Shown piece after piece: positions 13,888 to 58,304 of a stretch of 64,000 bases of DNA. The stretch's first letter is position 1; every line of letters begins with the position of its first letter. The notes below the pieces were generated by a model. The model was not told the DNA's origin, did not search any database, and saw only the letters and a list, made by a program, of their open reading frames with translations. Location: the NCBI GenBank assembly GCA_040357565.1, contig JBDODJ010000031.1, one strand, 5' to 3'. Made by a program: the position numbers and the translations under genes. The DNA comes from Cercozoa sp. M6MM. Lineage: Eukaryota; Protista; Endomyxa: Ascetosporea.

Positions 13888-15706
13888 CTACTCGTCATCC
13901 GAGTCGCTGCCGTTGCCGTCCTTGATCATGACGCCGTCGGCGTTCTTGGCCTGGGGCTCGGTCTTACCGAGGTCCTTACCGAGCGACTGGAGGGCAGCCT
14001 TGCGCATCTCGTCGACCGTACGCGGCGGTGGCGGCGGGCGCGGCACGCCTTGCTTGGGCTCCTTTGTGTCAAACTCCTTCTTTGACTCCTTCTTCGGCTC
14101 AAGCTTGGGCTCTTGCTCCGGCTCTTGCTTCATCGGCCAGTCCTCCTCCTTTTTTGCCGGCAGATCGCGACGTCGCCGGCGACTGTCGCTGCGGCTGCGG
14201 CGTCGTCGTCGCGAGCGAGAGCGCGAACGTTCGCGCTTCATGTCGCCACCACGACGCGACTCGCGCTTCACCGAGCGCGAACGGGTGCGACTGCGACGTC
14301 GCGAACGCGAGCGCGAATGACTCCGGTAGCGTCGCCTGTCAGCACAAAAAATCATCAGTACAAACAAAACTCACTCACAACTATTAGAATAGGCAGCGAT
14401 ACGAGCGACGATCACGGCTACGCGAACGGCGACGACGTCTCCTGCGATACAATAAAGGCGATACAAACATGTGCTGGGTTAAAGGGGAAATTACGAGCGC
14501 GAACGCGAGCGTGAACGGCGTCGCGACCGCGAGTCCGATCTGTACGACATCAGATATGATGTCACACTTGACTTAAACGACAACACACACACACGCAGAC
14601 ACATACACACACACTCACACACACACACACATGCAGGCACGCAGGCAGGCACGCAGGCACGAACGCACGAACACACACAGAAACACACGTACCGAGAGCG
14701 ACTTCTGCGACGCGAATGGCTGCGCGAACGGCGACTGCAACGCACGCACAAAGTTCGACAGATGCAGGCAAAGCACATCACAAACATAGCACAAGCACAC
14801 CCTGAGGTCGGTCCAAAAGCTGGCGCCGGTCGACCCACGTGGAAGCCAACGACGCGACGCATCCTTTCACGGTCGTTTCGCGCGCTGGAAGCAGCGTCGG
14901 CACGCTGCTGCAGCGCCTGCTCACGCACGCAAACAACACAAGTGCAAGGAACATGGGCATCTGCACGTTGAACAAAGAGCAGAGGCACCTCCTCGGAGAT
15001 GCCAGTATCACTGTTCTGCGACTCGACTAGCTTGGACCTGAAACAGATAAACAGACAACGTGAACGCAAAACGGCGATCGACATGTGGAGACACAGGCGA
15101 ATTCACCATAGGGACCGGCAGAAACGAAGTGCACTCTTACCGAAGAAGCCTGTTGCATGGCACCAAAAAAGTGCAAAAAGTAACAATGCATGGCACCAAA
15201 AAATGTGCACGAGCCACTGTACCACTGATACTCTCTTGCAACTGCACAGGGTCCGGAAACTGCTCCTGTTCCAGCTGCGCGATAATCATGCCTAAACAAA
15301 CGAGCATACGTTTCTACAACACAAACTAGGATCAGACAACACGCACAAATACGATCAGCCTGACTTTTAGTGCAAATTTAGCGACGTACCAGCAAGCACG
15401 TCGTCCGATATGCCAATCGTCTGCTTGAGTTCGTACATCAGCCACGGCATCAACGCGCTCAAGTTGACCCTGTACAGACACACAAATACACCCATGGCCG
15501 AGGATTTCTGACGAACTGACGAACGTACTTCGAGATGTCGACCTTGTGCTGATATTCGGGGATCTTGGAGCGTCGTGCTGACTTCTTCTTCTTTGTGAAA
15601 CGCCCATCCTGGGCCATGGAGACACCCTGCTCCACAACGAAAAAGTAAAAGGCCAAGCCCAACCAGCACCCACAGGCTAAGAAAAGCAGCAACTTACACA
15701 AAACAT
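13888..15706 (-). CDS. SRRM1: PWI-domain SR-rich splicing coactivator (SRm160)
   Basis: MFC|GVSMAQDGRFTKKKK...KVDISK|VNLSALMPWLMYELKQTIGISDDVL (PWI domain), followed by multiple RS-repeat exons. Confidence 0.85.
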
Positions 15707-42419: not shown

Positions 42420-44753
42420 CCTAATAGCAACGAGCTGAAGCTCATCGCCTCAAAGCTCGTCGTCTGGCAGTACGAAAACCTCGAGCGCTAGTTTGTCATG
42501 CTGTATCACACAACTTGGATTGTGCACTGAAAAGCATCACAATTCACATTAAGACATTAAGCATACCGGGTCAGCTTCATCTCCAAGGTCGTGTAGCATG
42601 CGAAGGCAGTGTGCAGTGACTATGTCAGCCTGTGTGCCCAAACTAGTCAACCGCACGTGCAATGTTGATTCAGTATGGGCGGAGCAAGGTACAGGCACAT
42701 CGAAACGAAACTGCAGCGCCAAAGCAACGCGCAGTTCACACCGCAAAATACTCTTTTTGTCCGTGTGAAATCTGTACGAAAAGAGTGCTCAAATCAGGTG
42801 ACATTAGTTTACATTGAGAAAAAAGACAGGACACGTCTCAAATAGGCGTCGAAAAAGCGTTGGAAGCTTCGCCAGCAAGGTCAGCAGCGGTTCATTGAAC
42901 TTAGCCGCCAACAGAATGCACTGCACGGAACAAAAGGGGAATACAAGTAGTCAAAACAAGTGTGAGTGCTGATACCACAGCAAAGACGAGTCGCAAATTG
43001 TCGCCGTCGACCAGACGTTGCAGGATCAAAAGGTCCTGTATCGAATCGAGGAACACACACACACACACACACATACACACACACACATACACACAAGCAT
43101 ACACACAGTAGATACGAGGTAGGTGGTGGCAAAAGCGATGGTGCTCAACTCGAGCAGGAAGGACGACGAGGACATATCGATATCGCCAGCGACACTGGTA
43201 CCGTGATTGGCGACGTGAGTACCTCTGTCGGCACCACCATCGGTGTCATGCACGAGACTGCTGACACTGCCACTGACGGTGTTGCCACCAGCGACACTGA
43301 CAACATTGACTGCAGTGGTGTCGGTGTGCATGTGCGGTATGTTGCTGCCTGTGCTGACGTGTCCGTAGGCCACTTGTACTACACGTGGTCAGTCACAAGA
43401 ACCAAGTCATTCCAACATCGTCAAAACGGTACAGATAGCGAGTCGTTTCAGCTTTCGAATGTCTGTCAGAGACTATGCAGTTATACACACATGCTCGTAC
43501 AACATAATGACTCAAGATACTCAAATCTCAAGTACAAGAGACGGCGGCATCGCAGATGCAAAGGCCGTTCTCCACTGCGTGCACACACCTTCCTCATCGC
43601 CAGTGCACATTACACAAAGAAGATACGTGTCGCACCTGCTCATCGATGGAAGCACGCACTTCTTCCGTGCGGATGTAAGAGATGGCACTGCTGATGACGA
43701 AAGGTGACGGCGACATCACCACTCGGTGTCGGCTGTCATGTTTGTACATAAAAGGACGAGAAACATGAACATAGTAGAGTTGAGGTACCCCAGCGCGAAC
43801 TGTAGTCTCGGGTCGTCGACAGTGTCAGCAGCGTATGTGTGCCGCACCCCTTCCTGCGCGTATGAGTTCACTGATAGACCCAAACTACATCTACATATGT
43901 ATGCCAGAGCACCTTTTCAAAAAACAGAACTGAGCCGTGTGGTCGCAATAACTCACCGAAACTGCCGTCTTCTGCCACTGCAACCCATACACACACTCCT
44001 TTAGAAAAGGTGTACAATTTGCTCCTAGAAGGGCAACATTACGCTGAGTTTCGATGTGTGCGGGTTGACAAAAGTGCTTCCACGGTTTCGGTGTCTGCTG
44101 GTAGATTACATATCATGCATAGTACACATGCGTCTCTTTAGTCAGGTAGAAATACCGTGGCCTGTGACATGACGGAGATGCGGCCGTAGGGCACCCACTT
44201 TCCTCCTGTACCAAATACACATACACACACGCACACATACACACACGCAAACATACACACACCCACACACACACACACACACACATACACACACACACAC
44301 ACACATAGACACACAGGTGACTCGAGAGCGAGTGGTACGCGACGATGTGCAGAGCAGGAAGGCTTCGTTGGCGAGTGAACCGGCGTGCTGCGAAATCGGT
44401 AGCATCCCGCGCGTCGTTTCTTGCCTGCACGCATGAACATGTGTTGTATATTTGGTGCGTGGTCCAAGGCAGGTCAGTACATTCAAAGACAGTTGTACCG
44501 CGAGGCAGCGATTTGCGATTTGTGACGTCGCCACTCTGGTTCGTGCGAGCATAACGGTACAGACATAGCAAAGGATACATATGTATGCTCTCGCTTGTAC
44601 CTTCCTGGCCTTCTCGATACACGCCGTAGATATCGGCGCGTGATCTGCGAGTCGCAGGCATGCAGCGCGACCTCATGCAACAAAACAAAACAAAAACATA
44701 CTTGGGGCTCGCTTCGCGTCGATGTGCAAAACTGCCGAGATTGTGTCTTTCAT
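42420..44753 (-). CDS. Hypothetical spliced protein of unknown function
   Basis: ATG at 44753, regular short GT-AG introns and open exons; no motif recognised. Confidence 0.4.
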
Positions 44754-45258
44754 CGTACTACATCATGCACTCACATGTAAGGATGCACTGCGCAAGTCGC
44801 GCACGACAGCGACAGATCGATACCATACGCCGCACTTCTTCTGCAGGTGGATCCTCTTTTCGAGAGTCATACCTGAGTGTCTGCGTACAAGAGCGAATAT
44901 GGCAACTGGTCACACAATTCAAAGCGAAATACACTTTTCGCTCACCAAAAGAAAAGTCTCAGCGGCGTTCAAAGCCTCAGGCGAAAGTTCAGCGAATGAA
45001 CGCTCTTCCTCTTCCATTGTGAGTCCGATAAAGTCGCTCACGCAAGTGCAGACACAGCTAAACCACCACAACTTCTATCGACTCAAAAGAAATCCGAAGC
45101 CAAAAACAAAAACGCTGCAAAATATCGCATCGATTGTGATTTTAGTGCGCCCCATGGTAAAAATATCGGTGTGAATGCGGTTAACAGGCTTTTTGTGCTG
45201 TTTGATTTCGTGCGCTTTTCTTTTGAACAATGTTTGGTTTTCTTCCTTGCGTCCACAA

Positions 45259-46520
45259 ATGATGCAGCAGATGCAAGAAGACGAGGACGAAGAAGCACCA
45301 CCGCCGACAGTGTTGGACCTACTGCAGCGAAGTCGACAGCAGCGCCTCGAACGCGCTCATTCAAGTCAGTCTGGCAACGTACTGTGCCCTCCCTCTCCTC
45401 AACAGATCCTTCTGGATCGTCCGTGCGTGTGTAGGTGCATTCGAGTCGAACACGGACAAGAGCACAGGTACGAGTGCAACGTGACTTGCAAGAACTCACG
45501 TCGATGCGCACGGCTGTGGAAGGGACGTCAACACTCGTCACTCTACCTGACTCGGATGTAGCTGATCACTACCTGGTTCTTCCGTGTCTCTCTTGTATGT
45601 TGACGTCTTGCAGAATAACCTGCGCATCCACCTCGAAGTACGGCCGTCGCGCGGATTTTTTGCCGGATTCGGTCTACACTTTGAGGTATCCGACTGTGTA
45701 CGACACAGCTGCCTCCCTTTGTGGTGTACTGCGTGTCATTTGGGGCAGATCGAGTGCTCGGAAAGGTACCCGTTCACTGCGCCGCAAGTGCGCTCACTCG
45801 CGAAAGTGTTCCACCCAAACATTCGCCTGCAGGACGGCGTCGTTCTTTTGCCGCTTCTCAACGAATGGGCCCCAACACTTGTACGGTGAACATACCGAGT
45901 GCACACCTGTGTGTGTGCAAATGCAGATACATGTGGACATGTGCAGTCGTTGAATTTCGTCGTTTACTCGCTTCAGTTGATGCTGTGTGATCCTGCACGC
46001 GATGAGCACTGCGGTACATTCGCATACTCTGAATATTCTGCATGGATGTATGGTATTTAGTCGGAAACGAAACAGCAGCGTACCTGTACCAAAGCGACCG
46101 CGAGCAGTATGCACGAGCGGTGCTTCAGTTCTTTTTTGCCTTCTCCTTACATATTCATTAGCATACAGGTGGAACATGCCTCACGAGGAGGCGAATTCAA
46201 TGGAGTGGTTTACTCTGATCTGTAACTCAACTGCAATACTCTTTGCTACTGTCATCAAAAATGCCCTTGCCATCGCAGGAGACGACAGACACCGACAAGG
46301 AGGAAACGGAGAATTAATGTGTGTTTGTACCGACTTTTTAGTGTGCGTGATTTGTCTATGTGTATTCTTGTGCATGCAGGAGGAAGAAGCGATAGCTATG
46401 GACTTTTCGAATCTGCGCATAGACACGCCACGCGCCAAGAGACGGCGCAAAGGTACCCCGATTCCGAAGTCCAGACATAGCAGTGTCGATACCGAAGTGT
46501 GTATGTGTGCACAGCAGTAA
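45259..46520 (+). CDS. UBC12/UBE2M-like E2-fold protein lacking the catalytic cysteine
   Basis: RAQVRVQRDLQEL, VRPSRGFFAG, YPFTAPQVRSLAKVFHPNIRLQDGVVLLPLLNEWAPTL versus the family pattern HPNID..GxVCLxIL..W.P. Confidence 0.8.
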
Positions 46521-46860
46521 CAAGAGACGCGTTGGCACTCGAAAATCAACTGGTCACGTGGAGTCTTCCTGTACATCACAGCCTGTCATGATATATACAC
46601 TCTGCAATACGTGCAACTGTCTCAGGAGGGAGCATTTCAGACACCTAGCTTGCAAGCACAAGTACCAGAGCCAATTGCGAGTTTTGTGTTTTTCGCGCAA
46701 CCATGAGCACGAGCAGGTGTCGGCACCGACTTCACGTGGCAATACCTCTCCGAGCCATAGTGCACGGACCAACGAGTCAGCAGCCGTGTCTCTTTCAATG
46801 CCTGCGCATCAACGCAGGCGAAGTGAGGGAGCCTGGCCACAGAGACACCGCAACGCCTTC

Positions 46861-46960
46861 AGTTCAACCTACAGTTAACAGTCCGATTTTGTACCAACTC
46901 TGTAGTTTCCCTGTCTCGGTCCTGGGGTGGGCCACAAGCGCATGGCCATAGCCCAGCGCC
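46861..46960 (-). mobile_element. Degenerate retroelement 3' fragment (copy F)
   Basis: ACCAACTCTGTAGTTTCCCTGTC..GGGGTGGGCCACAAGCGCATGGCC matches copies B, D and E. Confidence 0.7.
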
Positions 46961-47199
46961 CACTTAGGGTAGGTTGAACTATCGTTTTAGAGCCCGAGAG
47001 GTCTTGACCAGCGGCTTTAAATTCTGCGACTCGGGAGAACTGAGCTCACGGTCAGTGACATAAGACAAGACATGATAGTCACTTATTTGGTACAAAAGTG
47101 AACAAATTTGACGTGTTCGCTAGCATCTGACAGCCCTTAATTTTATATGTGATTGGAATAACCAAACATACAACTCGAGTGATGGCGTGCGGGAACGAC

Positions 47200-48048
47200 T
47201 TAGAACTTGAGCTTCGAGAAGAGGAAGGCAGTCGGGGCCGTCTGCTCCTTCTCGAGGTAACTGCGCACGCAACAGACACGTTAGTCGACTTGCTTGCCGC
47301 ACTGAATGGATCTCGCTTCCAGTCGAGACATTCGCGAGCTGAAGAACAGCTCGCCGATGTCTTGCGGACGAGCCCACCAACCACCGAAATGGAAGGCAGG
47401 ACACGACCGCAGCTCAGCGCGGTGCCGCTCCAAAACGGAGCCGACACAACCAAACGCCTCTGCCGGTTTGTGCTGGACGGGTCGCCCCTTACGATGGAGA
47501 TCGTGCAAGCCACAAGCAATCACAAGGCAAAAGCGAAAAAAACGCGCCAAGTGAGCAGACACAAGAGCAAAATAAATCCGCTGTACCGCGTCTTCATCGT
47601 CTTGCGCAGCGTCTTCTTGACCTCGGCCTTCTTGTCAGCATCCTTGATGGCGGCGGCCGTCACCAGGTCCTTAAGCTGGAGGTCAGCGTTCGGGATCGTG
47701 AAGCGCGTCGGCATGACGTGCTGCAGGTTCACGAACTTGACGAACGACTTGATCTGCGACTTGCGCAGGATCTGCTTTTTCGACATCGACTTGGTGACCT
47801 TCAGCGGGGCGCGCTCAACACCGGCCACGATGACGTGCGGGAACGGGCGGGCCTTGCTGCCGTTGTTGACCTTGACGATCACGGCCTTCTTACCGGCGAA
47901 ACGGCCAGCAAGCAGCACAACCACACGGCCGGGCTTGATGCTGCGCGCAAAGACAATATATCATCAAGCGAAAAATACGAACAGCGCCCCAAAAAAGCAC
48001 TTATAAGTGCGCAACAACTTACAACTTCTTGCTCTCGTTCTTGGACAT
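47200..48048 (-). CDS. RPL27: 60S ribosomal protein eL27; introns 47941-48022 and 47261-47586
   Basis: MSKNESKKF|IKPGRVVVLLAGRFAGKKAVIVK...KSFVKFVNLQHVMPTRF...KTR|YLEKEQTAPTAFLFSKLKF*. Confidence 0.96.
47288..47522 (-). ncRNA. Putative structured intronic RNA of unknown class in RPL27 intron 2
   Basis: Nested long-range stems plus several hairpins with GCGA and UUCG tetraloops, folded by eye (see findings). Confidence 0.65.
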
Positions 48049-48235
48049 CTCGAGTGTGTTGTAGGGTTCCCAAAAAAAAACAGGATTCGCTGCTTAGTAT
48101 TTTTGGCACAGGCGCTCCGGTCTGTTTCTCCCTGGGCTCAATTATTTTTGCCCGGGCAGAGCCCGAAGTGCGAGCAGTCCAGAGTCCTGTCCAGTGGTGT
48201 CTAGTGTTTCTTTGGCACTCTAATTGGCGCGATCG

Positions 48236-50855
48236 ATGGAGGAAAGCTATCAGGGTGACCCACAGCAGCCGTATAATGTCAGTAGGTATGTTGTGGCATT
48301 TCGGAATGCATCGAGTTTTAATTTTAAGTGGTCATCGTTTTTTTTTTTTTTTTGCACAAAGCGATGAGGGTGACGACATCGCTTTCGATGATGTGGGTGT
48401 AGCCTCGCTCCCCGGAAGTGTCGCCAATGTTGTTAAGGTATTGGCCCTCCCTTTCTTTACTTTTACCCGCTTGACCCCCTTATCCCCACCCCCACCCCCA
48501 CCCCCTTCTAACCCCCCCCCCTACCCCCTAGAACGTCATAGGCAGCGGAATCCTGTCGCTTCCGTTCGCTTTTAGACTGGCCGGTGCCCTCTTTCTGAGT
48601 TTGGTATGATGCATATGCCTGGTGCGTCACGTGCAATCTCGAGTTTAGGTTTGTGGCCGGGTTTGCTGCTGTTCCTTCTGTGCTGGGTGCTCTCGATCGC
48701 GACCTACCTAATACTCGCCAAGTGTGCACAGGAGGCTGCTGTATTGTTTTCTGTCCTGTCCTGGCTATGTAAGGTGTGTGGCAGGTGCGCGGAAAATCTG
48801 TGCATATGCGTTTAATACGCAGGAAAGGAGCGCCGCCAAGGGCGTTGCCTTTAGCTACAGCTACAAGGACGTGATGGCAGCAGCAAAAGGTCCGCGCTGG
48901 GCAATTGCTGTCGATTACACAATTTCTATCCTCAGCATCATTTCATGCACGAGCTATATCGTGCTAATTGGCGACTACGGTGCCGCCATGAACCTCGTAT
49001 TTTCTGGCATTCACTCACGTCCTGGCAAGTGTAGTACCATGAATAGGTGTGTTCGCCGGACACACTGTGTACCAACCGTGCCGTACAGCAACTGGTGGTG
49101 GCCGTTGGCATCCTGCTGCCACTGTGTTTGCTGCGTGACCTGTCACCTCTGTACCACCCTTCTTGATGCTGGCACACATTGTGGTATTTCAGAATGAACA
49201 CTTTAGGAAGTACATGAGTGTCGTTGGACTGCTTGCTGTTGTGTAACGTGCTGCTTTGCGATGTAACTACTCGCGATGTTGCTCTTGCATGTGTTGGCAG
49301 GTACACGGCCGTCTTTGTTGTTGTCACCGACGACACCGGTGATTCGGTTCCTGGTATGCGTGCTCGTTTTGGTTTCAATGAGGCATCCAAGCAGCAAAGC
49401 ATGGGTACGTAGAGGATAGGAAGCTAGACTGGTGGAATTTTGACGTGCAACTGTTCGAAAGTGTCTCTCTCCTGAACGGTATACATCTCGCATCTTACCT
49501 TAGCCGTACCCCTCGCCTTCTCCCACTGTTTTAACCTCGCAGCCACATTTTCGAGTCACTACAATGCACCGCGCTTCTACGCCGAACTCAAGAATCGATC
49601 GGTATGTTGCTAGTTGAATGTGCGTCTGTCTGTAGCTATTGGTTGGTGTGCCTGTGTAGATTAAGAGGTTTCGCGCACTGACAGTGTCGGCGTATGGACT
49701 TGTCGCTGTCCTCTCTGGCGTCGGTACGTTGTTAGGCTTTCTGCTTTTGTGCGGTTCATTTTTATGGGATCGTAGTGGGCGTTGGTGCTTATGCAACGTT
49801 CGGTCGGGCCACGAAAGGCAATATCTTGGTACCTTTCTTTTTGTTGTTGTGTATGAGCCTGTGATTAAGTACGAATGTGGTGGCTGTAGCTGAGCTACTC
49901 GGAGGACAATGTCGGCGCCGTTGTTGCGCGACTTGCCACTCTAGTTGTATGCTCATCTTCTTTTCAGTTTCCGCACTACCTTCCTTCCTTCCTTCCTTCC
50001 TTCCTTCCTTCCTTCGTTCCTTTATTTCTTCCTTCTTTTTTCCCTACCTTCTTTCCTCCTTTCCTCCTTTTCTTCATTCCGTCCTTTCTTCCTATCTACA
50101 CCTATTTATCTCCCTCCCTCTACGCGGGTTCGTCTACAATCACGCTGTCGTTTAGTAGTCAATCATGGGTACGTTCGCACTCGTGTTCAATGCGGGCCGA
50201 GTCGCCACCAGCAACCTTCTCGTGCGACTGCTCAATCGCATCGACAGAAGAGACGATAGCGCTATCAACAGCAGTGTCAGCAGTGATGACACCAGACTCC
50301 TGGTGGAGGATGGCAACTCTGTCGGTAGGATTGCTTTGTGCATGTCTCAGTCTGTGCAGTAATTGGTGTTTTGCAGGTGCCCCTCCCAGAGACGATTTGA
50401 CGAAGTCGCAGCGCTACGCTCTCACTATGTTTATGTTGATCTGCGTCACGACTGCAGGTACTAGAGGATCCAGTTGGCATGTGCGTCTCTATTTGATTGT
50501 TGTGGAAACAGGAGTACTGGCTGATGACGTGTCCACAGTGAATGCCATCAAGGGCGCTCTCACCAACTCCCCTGGTACCGTCGTTCCCTTGATTTTTCTA
50601 TCGGTTGTGCTACGCATGCGACGTTTTGTTTGTGCAGTTACATACATCTTTCCGGGCATGATCTGGCTGTCACTCGGCGACTCGCAACATCGGTGGATGC
50701 ATCGCTTCGCCTACTTTCTCATCGTTTTCGGAGTGGTTTGTTTGTGATTTTGATATGGATGCATGCTCGTGGTTGTTTTATGCTTTGCTTTCTTATAGTT
50801 CACATCAATTGTCAGTCTGTCGGTCACATTGGTCAAACTGGGCAAGACGAACTGA
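48236..50855 (+). CDS. Amino-acid transporter (Aa_trans / SLC38-AVT family)
   Basis: ASLPGSVANVVK|NVIGSGILSLPFAFRLAG, SYIVLIGDY, PLCLLRDLS, FAFSHC..HYNAPRFYAELKNRS, YIFPGM. Confidence 0.9.
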
Positions 50856-51000
50856 CTGGACTGTGCTCCCGCTTTACTGTACCGTGAGGTCATCGATAGC
50901 TATGTTTTGCGGTGCCGTGCTGTGCCTTCAGTTGAATCGTGCGGATACGGATTGGATCGAATGCGCGTGTGCGGGATTCCGCGCCGTCATTTGATTTGAT

Positions 51001-52955: not shown

Positions 52956-58304
<5,349 letters not shown>

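Follow-up and report, generated by a model that had tools for sequence, protein, structure and literature searches.

The sequence analyzed here is a 64,000-nucleotide window (64 kb) of contig JBDODJ010000031.1 in the assembly of Cercozoa sp. M6MM (GCA_040357565.1), an amoeba strain that is now named Lemnamoeba sinaloensis (Apofilosa, Rhizaria) (PMC13746701). The source of this strain is fish gills. The minus strand of positions 47200–48048 carries the gene for ribosomal protein eL27 (RPL27), which has three exons and a 146-aa product; a protein search, for which exon 2 served as the query, found this product to be identical to the NCBI model of the same strain. A search for a second RPL27 copy in the genome found none, and the gene is single copy. 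The features of the gene are as follows:

48048–48023, minus strand: exon 1 (gene model)
48022–47941, minus strand: intron 1, 82 nt (gene model; removed in public contigs)
47940–47587, minus strand: exon 2 (gene model; covered by public contigs)
47586–47261, minus strand: intron 2, 326 nt (supported by the frame running on through the TR|Y junction and by the match of the 146-aa product to the NCBI model)
47586–47581 and 47263–47261, minus strand: splice sites of intron 2, GTACAG at the 5' end and CAG at the 3' end
47520–47522, minus strand: TGA that is in frame when intron 2 is retained (reading of the sequence)
47280–47286, minus strand: GACTAAC box of the branch site, with the 3' splice site about 20 nt away
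47260–47200, minus strand: exon 3 (gene model)

The sequence and the NCBI model bear out the gene structure, the intron boundaries, and the branch box given in an initial annotation of this locus, and homologous eL27 proteins run through the position of intron 2 without interruption (..DRY..). The same annotation had noted that retention of intron 2 would end the protein at position 47520. This stop is indeed in frame and lies 66 nt into the intron, and an open reading frame at 47520–47924 terminates at the same TGA. The genome of L. sinaloensis has 13 introns per gene with a mean length of 82 bp, and no Introner signal was detected in it (PMC13746701). Intron 2 of RPL27 is thus about four times as long as the norm.

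Contigs from four public sequencing runs match exon 2 at 100% identity and have intron 1 excised exactly at the predicted sites. In these runs, for which depth was low, only contigs were available, and the library type is unrecorded, no contig was found on intron 2 or exon 3. The runs with exon 2 contigs (47587–47940; X1, X2, X5, and X12) belong to no fewer than four studies and carry as many different organism labels. The presence of contigs that are identical in exon 2 and spliced at intron 1 shows that this amoeba or its RNA occurs in samples labelled otherwise.

The initial annotation had proposed a highly structured element of about 235 nt in intron 2, and it asked whether the folding energy exceeds that of shuffled sequences. 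It does, both for the whole intron and for a shorter part of it. The 326-nt intron has a predicted folding energy of -136.8 kcal/mol (z -3.33; none of 100 shuffles as good), and its antisense strand has a z of -2.31. The scans of the 64-kb window for background structure were regression-based and composition-corrected, with windows of 230 nt and 126 nt. In the 230-nt scan, only two of 1094 background windows outscored the element as first proposed. The signal is unevenly distributed along the intron (positions counted from its 5' end). Sliding 120-nt windows have z values between +0.8 and -1.9 over positions 1–135 and between -2.8 and -4.2 from position 136 on. Among the sub-stretches, positions 140–261 (122 nt; z -6.64) and positions 165–290 (47297–47422, 126 nt; z -6.15) fold better than each of 200 shuffles, and the 5' hairpin at positions 52–132 was equaled by 17 of 200 shuffles (z -1.7). 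Together, the sub-stretches and the sliding windows indicate that structure beyond chance is limited to positions 140–290.

The 126-nt stretch at positions 165–290 has a MFE of -68.4 kcal/mol, and the best of its 200 shuffles is weaker by 10 kcal/mol. Its MFE structure is also the centroid and accounts for 11% of the ensemble, and its ensemble diversity is 7.3 compared with a shuffle mean of 29.3 (0.5th percentile). In the 126-nt scan, which placed windows on a 42-nt grid on both strands, none of the 3018 windows is as extreme as the domain, which has the same size, and the grid window nearest to it ranks second among the 3018. The antisense of the significant stretches also folds well, with z values from -4.6 to -4.75 (-4.75 for the 126-nt domain). 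The five G-U pairs and the larger z of the sense strand therefore give moderate support only to a preference for that strand. The composition of the intron is A-poor (13–14% A).

These scans also drew attention to other parts of the window. The top grid window of the 126-nt scan is 43177–43302 (minus strand). A 230-nt stretch at 57961–58190 (minus strand; z -5.68, none of 200 shuffles as good) contains a perfect inverted repeat of 13 bp, rich in A/U, together with three more hairpins, and it has no Rfam match. The stretch at 14146–14375 (plus strand) is a composition-corrected outlier that is GC-rich and has CG-rich, repeat-like palindromes (z -2.9).

The structured part of intron 2 is predicted to consist of one hairpin followed by a four-way junction. 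The components are listed below from 5' to 3' on the sense strand, together with the 5' half of the intron:

47448–47586, minus strand: 5' half of intron 2 (positions 1–139), U/G-rich, with three CUUGUG copies, folding no better than chance
47422–47447, minus strand: hairpin H2 (positions 140–165), 10 bp with one bulge and a GUUUU loop, inner stem probability 0.91
47297–47422, minus strand: four-way-junction domain (positions 165–290), 126 nt, predicted fold in which MFE structure and centroid agree
47413–47422, minus strand: 5' strand of P1 (positions 165–174), pairing with 47297–47306 and holding the only CUGA of the intron
47363–47411, minus strand: P2 rod hairpin (positions 176–224), 49 nt, about 21 bp with U-U mismatches, three G-U pairs, and a UUCG loop, probabilities 0.70–1.0
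47326–47362, minus strand: P3 hairpin (positions 225–261), 37 nt, with 6 bp, a 2x2 internal loop, 8 perfect bp, and a UUCUU loop, probabilities 0.96–1.0
47307–47321, minus strand: P4 mini hairpin (positions 266–280), 15 nt, 4 bp with a 7-nt loop, found in the MFE structure and the centroid of the isolated domain
47297–47306, minus strand: 3' strand of P1 (positions 281–290), ending 10 nt upstream of the branch box

In this arrangement, P3 joins P2 directly with zero linker, and P4, the least certain arm, runs straight into the 3' strand of P1, also without a linker. Stacking of P1 on P4 and of P2 on P3 can be envisaged in such a junction. The 10-bp P1 helix has a probability of 0.42 in the intron alone and 0.72 when 40-nt exon flanks are added. 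The helices of the domain stay highly probable in the full intron and with the exon flanks, and the four local hairpins have probabilities of 0.6–1.0 in the full-intron ensemble. The distance from the end of the domain is 10 nt to the branch box and 36 nt to the 3' splice site.

This model differs in several respects from the one first proposed. All the complementary segments that had been listed exist, and each pair is Watson-Crick or G-U. However, the nested stems that were thought to close the 235-nt element (S1–S4) have probabilities below 0.01 in the full intron with or without the 40-nt exon flanks, as do two of the listed hairpins (H1 and H3) in the full-intron ensemble, and a model that enforces the nested closing stems lies 6 kcal/mol above the MFE. 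The pairing of 47413–47422 with 47297–47306, which had been described as a 10-bp alternative to the outer stem, was correctly located but is in fact the favored helix (P1; 0.42–0.72). Similarly, the competing pairings on which a conformational switch had been postulated are all present, yet they are not in balance, given that one of the two conformers has a probability below 0.01. The predictions thus describe a fold that is real, but shorter and otherwise arranged than was first thought.

No known RNA class accounts for this fold. Searches with the Rfam 15 covariance models, which cover riboswitches, ribozymes, snRNAs, RNase P/MRP, SRP, and telomerase RNAs among others, found no match at E<=1 in 44000–51000, which includes the locus, and none at E<=0.1 across the whole 64-kb window. 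The same search works on this genome, where it detects SNORD18, U5, RNase P, and RNase MRP RNAs, indicating that the RNAs of this organism are not generally aberrant. An identity as RNase P or MRP RNA, of which the initial annotation had seen no conserved regions, can be rejected since both RNAs lie at other loci: the nuclear RNase P RNA on contig C183 (G000:C183:7559-7802, minus strand; 97.6 bits, E 8.5e-28) and the MRP RNA on the contig of the window but outside the window (G000:C31:81534-81860, plus strand; 86 bits, E 1.8e-23). This genome also has partial LSU rRNA-like matches at G000:C647:6139-6998 (plus strand; model positions 962–1888, 253 and 336 bits). The main rDNA unit is on a different contig, C314, and the C647 matches could represent a second rDNA type, an organelle, or a contaminant.

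Box C/D and H/ACA snoRNA identities were rejected because the intron lacks the boxes, the guides, and the arrangement of hairpins that define these classes, in agreement with the initial reading that such features are absent. For the C box (RUGAUGA), neither strand of the intron has a match with one mismatch or fewer, the best sense-strand candidate being GUGAUUG at position 64 with two mismatches. The sole CUGA that might serve as a D box (positions 170–173) lies inside the 5' strand of P1, and the sequences beside the candidate boxes are not complementary to each other, as a terminal stem would require. The best contiguous duplexes with the SSU, ITS/5.8S, and LSU sequences of this organism have 10–12 Watson-Crick pairs compared with 10–13 in shuffled introns, and none abuts the CUGA correctly. 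The H box ANANNA occurs nowhere on the sense strand. ACA is found only at positions 3, 116, and 227, and the hairpin before position 227 is a rod with 1–2-nt U-U mismatches and no pocket. A scan of the intron for a hairpin-box-hairpin-box layout returned no candidates. A very divergent C/D or H/ACA snoRNA, with boxes that drifted past recognition, would fit the size, the host gene, and the presence of one verified intronic C/D snoRNA in this genome (described below). However, the failure of all defining box and guide tests and the ability of Rfam to recognize SNORD18, U5, RNase P, and MRP RNAs of the same organism largely refute this explanation, and we regard it as very improbable.

Several further candidates were examined. 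Telomerase RNA was rejected because the reported TAA[G]n motif occurs just once, on the sense strand, and there is no 1.5-repeat template, and a tRNA search found none. Hidden coding sequence was also rejected: the open reading frames that span the intron have no Pfam match, and their length is explained by the A-poor composition. Dispersed copies, as expected from a mobile or repeated element, were sought in the genome by BLAST with the intron and with a covariance model of the domain; both recovered only the locus itself. Accordingly, this single-copy element is not a MITE, an Introner, or another repeat. Based on these predictions and searches, the domain is a real, unusually stable, and well-defined fold for its composition that is unique to its locus and outside known RNA families.

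Long introns occur in other ribosomal-protein genes of the same genome. Intron 2 of RPL13 (316 nt; L018, 1886–2201, minus strand) and intron 1 of eL42 (326 nt; L019, 1687–2012, minus strand) have z values of -1.3 and -1.8, respectively, neither of which is significant against shuffles. By comparison, intron 1 of RPS14 (uS11), which is 470 nt long and located directly after the ATG (L021, 1915–2384, minus strand; G000:C132), has a z of -5.7 (antisense -3.6) and two structured zones, with no snoRNA features and no Rfam match. In yeast, RPS14B has a classic autoregulated intron. None of these three long introns has a Rfam match or an H/ACA layout on the sense strand. Homology among the long introns was rejected, as no two of them, the RPL27 intron included, have sequence in common. 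The first introns of eL42 and RPS14 have a common extended 5' end, GTGCGTAG(A/G)ACTC. Long unique introns without snoRNAs are thus a recurrent feature of the ribosomal-protein genes of L. sinaloensis, with strong structure in two of the four (RPL27 and RPS14).

An intronic snoRNA is nevertheless present elsewhere in this genome. Intron 2 of RPS3A (about 197 nt) contains a SNORD18-like C/D snoRNA (L024, 1907–1978, plus strand; G000:C280) with a score of 36.7 bits (E 1.7e-4), just below the gathering score, and its end is separated from the putative branch site by about 55 nt and from the 3' splice site by 75 nt. A U5 snRNA gene (L024, 3152–3269, plus strand; G000:C280; 51.6 bits) is located downstream of RPS3A at a distance of about 1 kb.

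For conservation in relatives, the closest eL27 protein among 5.8 billion proteins is 57% identical, and the closest eL27 locus among metagenome contigs is 53% identical. Distant eL27 genes with a readable C-terminus have no long intron at the site of intron 2.

The reading that we tentatively favor, with a rough probability of 0.4, is that the domain acts in cis to modulate how a long ribosomal-protein intron is spliced, with a parallel in yeast, rather than being a separate RNA gene. About a quarter of this probability belongs to a special case that involves eL27 itself and is considered below. Once transcribed, positions 140–290 would fold into a hairpin and a compact four-way junction, leaving 10 nt between the closing helix P1 and the downstream GACTAAC branch box. 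The RNA upstream of the branch site is the region contacted in branch-site recognition and U2 snRNP binding. A rigid domain placed where branch-site factors and the U2 snRNP need this RNA may set or modulate the efficiency of splicing. The domain might act alone or as a platform for a protein, with excess eL27 being one candidate. In RNA left unspliced, the reading frame would reach the TGA after 66 nt of intron, with a truncated product or degradation of the RNA as the outcome. Such a cis-acting modulator is favored because the junction, rigid and well defined, lies immediately upstream of a branch box that fits the consensus. Consistent with it are the strength of the fold, its top outlier rank in the 64-kb window, the high helix probabilities, and the proximity to the branch box (10 nt, compared with about 55 nt for the verified SNORD18-like snoRNA). 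The lack of snoRNA boxes, guides, Rfam match, or paralogue points in the same direction, as does the occurrence of unique introns of 316–470 nt without snoRNA features in other ribosomal-protein genes, including the strongly structured RPS14 intron.

Some observations count against a cis-acting role. The branch box is already consensus-like, such that an enhancer is not needed, and the insignificant z values of RPL13 and eL42 show that structure is not a rule for long ribosomal-protein introns of this organism. In addition, the antisense strand of the domain folds well too, and there is no similarity to the rRNA of this organism that would suggest a mimic of the eL27 site. A role in bringing the splice sites together is not specifically supported, given that the mean graph distance that separates the 5' splice site from the branch site (24.3) is no shorter than that in 25 shuffles (24.5 +/- 6.8); any sequence of such length and GC content collapses alike.

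Long structured introns with zipper stems have been described in yeast ribosomal-protein genes (Rogic 2008, PMC2536676; Kumar et al. 2025, PMC12350175 / bioRxiv 10.1101/2022.07.22.501175), and it is these introns that the RPL27 domain resembles most closely overall. As in Saccharomyces, a ribosomal-protein gene contains an intron several times the usual length of its genome. The differences are a rhizarian host, the absence of homology, and a four-way junction instead of a single long stem, and the RPL27 fold is a prediction only. When compared with the zipper-stem definition, which derives from the yeast spliceosome and may not transfer to this amoeba, P1 ends 10 nt from the box and leaves a linker of about 158+10 nt, which is too long. 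The outer stems (about 61+3 nt) fall in the range for the total, but they end 3 nt from the box and have probabilities below 0.01.

The special case of the favored reading is specific feedback by eL27, in which free eL27 would recognize either the domain or the outer stems and toggle the intron between splice-competent and splice-incompetent folds. Autoregulatory intron elements of ribosomal-protein genes (of the RPL30, RPS14B, RPL22B, and RPL7B type) are bound by the gene's own protein, often at a mimic of its rRNA site. In yeast RPL7B, the intron can adopt either of two mutually exclusive structures, and when Rpl7 binds one of them, a splicing-enhancing stem is lost (Granas et al. 2025, PMC12311795). 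The logic would be the same in RPL27, where the segment at positions 273–297, near the branch site, can pair either locally with positions 165–174 (P1) or over a long range with positions 68–90 (the stems first proposed), and where unspliced RNA is likewise unproductive through the early stop. However, the two states are far from balanced, as the outer stems have probabilities below 0.01 compared with 0.42–0.72 for P1. The RPL27 intron thus differs from that of RPL7B in the strongly unequal predicted stability of its alternatives, as well as in its consensus-like branch site and in that binding of eL27 is hypothetical. The binding site of eL27 is in domain III of 25S rRNA (PMC6795146), and no rRNA-like motif was found in the domain. 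In a sequence-level comparison, the best sense-strand match of the intron to the rRNA of this organism is 17 nt long (E 0.05) and lies outside domain III. A search of the literature found no report of eL27 autoregulation. Feedback of this specific kind therefore seems improbable.

Among the explanations that do not involve splicing control, the one with the greatest weight, though still an unlikely one in our view, is that the structure is neutral. The intron may have grown by insertion or local inverted duplication, and the hairpins would then be tolerated by-products without a selected role. This would account for the structured antisense strand (z -4.6 to -4.75), as inverted repeats at the DNA level would give, and for stems with perfect 8-bp palindromic arms. 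Short perfect hairpins are also found in the other long introns of this genome, and the excess of G-U pairs over A-C mismatches is explicable by the A-poor composition. The element is moreover lineage-specific, as distant relatives lack a long intron at this site. What argues against neutrality is that the domain tops all 3018 windows of its size in the 64 kb and that its fold is a clean four-way junction, in which linkers have zero length, instead of one long palindrome. The absence of copies elsewhere also means that it is not a repeat family, and no Introner signal was found in the genome (PMC13746701).

Less probable still is a hosted orphan ncRNA, for which a region of 125–150 nt would be freed from the excised intron and persist as a stable, protein-bound RNA that is neither C/D nor H/ACA. 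Ribosomal-protein genes are the usual hosts of intronic RNAs. The sense strand has a strong and well-defined structure with a size within the range of snoRNAs, and the SNORD18-like snoRNA in RPS3A shows that this genome hosts at least one intronic snoRNA. As in RPS3A, an oversized ribosomal-protein intron owes its extra length to a discrete structured insert. However, the RPL27 insert has no C/D boxes, terminal stem flanking such boxes, guide, or Rfam match, has about double the length, and is separated from the branch region by 10 nt instead of about 55 nt. It is without the protein-binding boxes that protect from exonucleases (no C box, a buried CUGA, no ANANNA, and no pocketed ACA), its complementarity to rRNA is not above that of shuffles, and no paralogue, family, or Rfam match was found. 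The lack of contigs on the domain in four RNA-like runs that do cover exon 2 also argues against a stable RNA, albeit weakly given the low depth and the unknown libraries. A precedent for such RNAs comes from yeast introns, in which non-snoRNA structures were predicted with an enrichment in ribosomal-protein genes and some were detected as maintained RNAs (Hooks et al. 2016, PMC4937481). Those structures were predicted from conservation across multiple species and were tested by RT-PCR and deletion, whereas the RPL27 domain is known from the sequence of one genome. In the same study, the intron of yeast RPL27A served as a negative control without predicted structure (PMC4937481).

A related and rather doubtful proposal is that the domain of 126–150 nt is itself a functional RNA, either as a stable non-C/D, non-H/ACA RNP released from the intron or as a protein-sensing module, responsive to eL27 or an assembly factor, that gates the use of the branch site. 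If such a module exists, splicing-level feedback of ribosomal-protein genes, so far known in fungi and animals, would extend to Rhizaria. More generally, if the structure is functional, the yeast-style link between a ribosomal-protein gene and a long structured regulatory intron would have had an independent origin in a rhizarian amoeba whose introns are very short (mean 82 nt). It would also provide a compact and well-defined RNA for testing how structure adjacent to the branch site affects splicing. The long intron of RPS14 is comparable and even more strongly structured, and a small class of such introns may thus exist in this genome. At present, the domain may best be regarded as a well-supported structure prediction.

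A final observation concerns branch sequences. Intron 1 of RPL27 (47941–48022, minus strand; 82 nt) has a GC content of 0.42 and a z of +0.7. Near its 3' end it contains TTGATGAT, which is C-box-like but probably represents the branch region, and the RPS14 intron has GTGATGATG, which resembles TTGATGAT of RPL27 intron 1. From these sequences, CTAAC-type and TGAT-type branch sequences both appear to be in use in L. sinaloensis.
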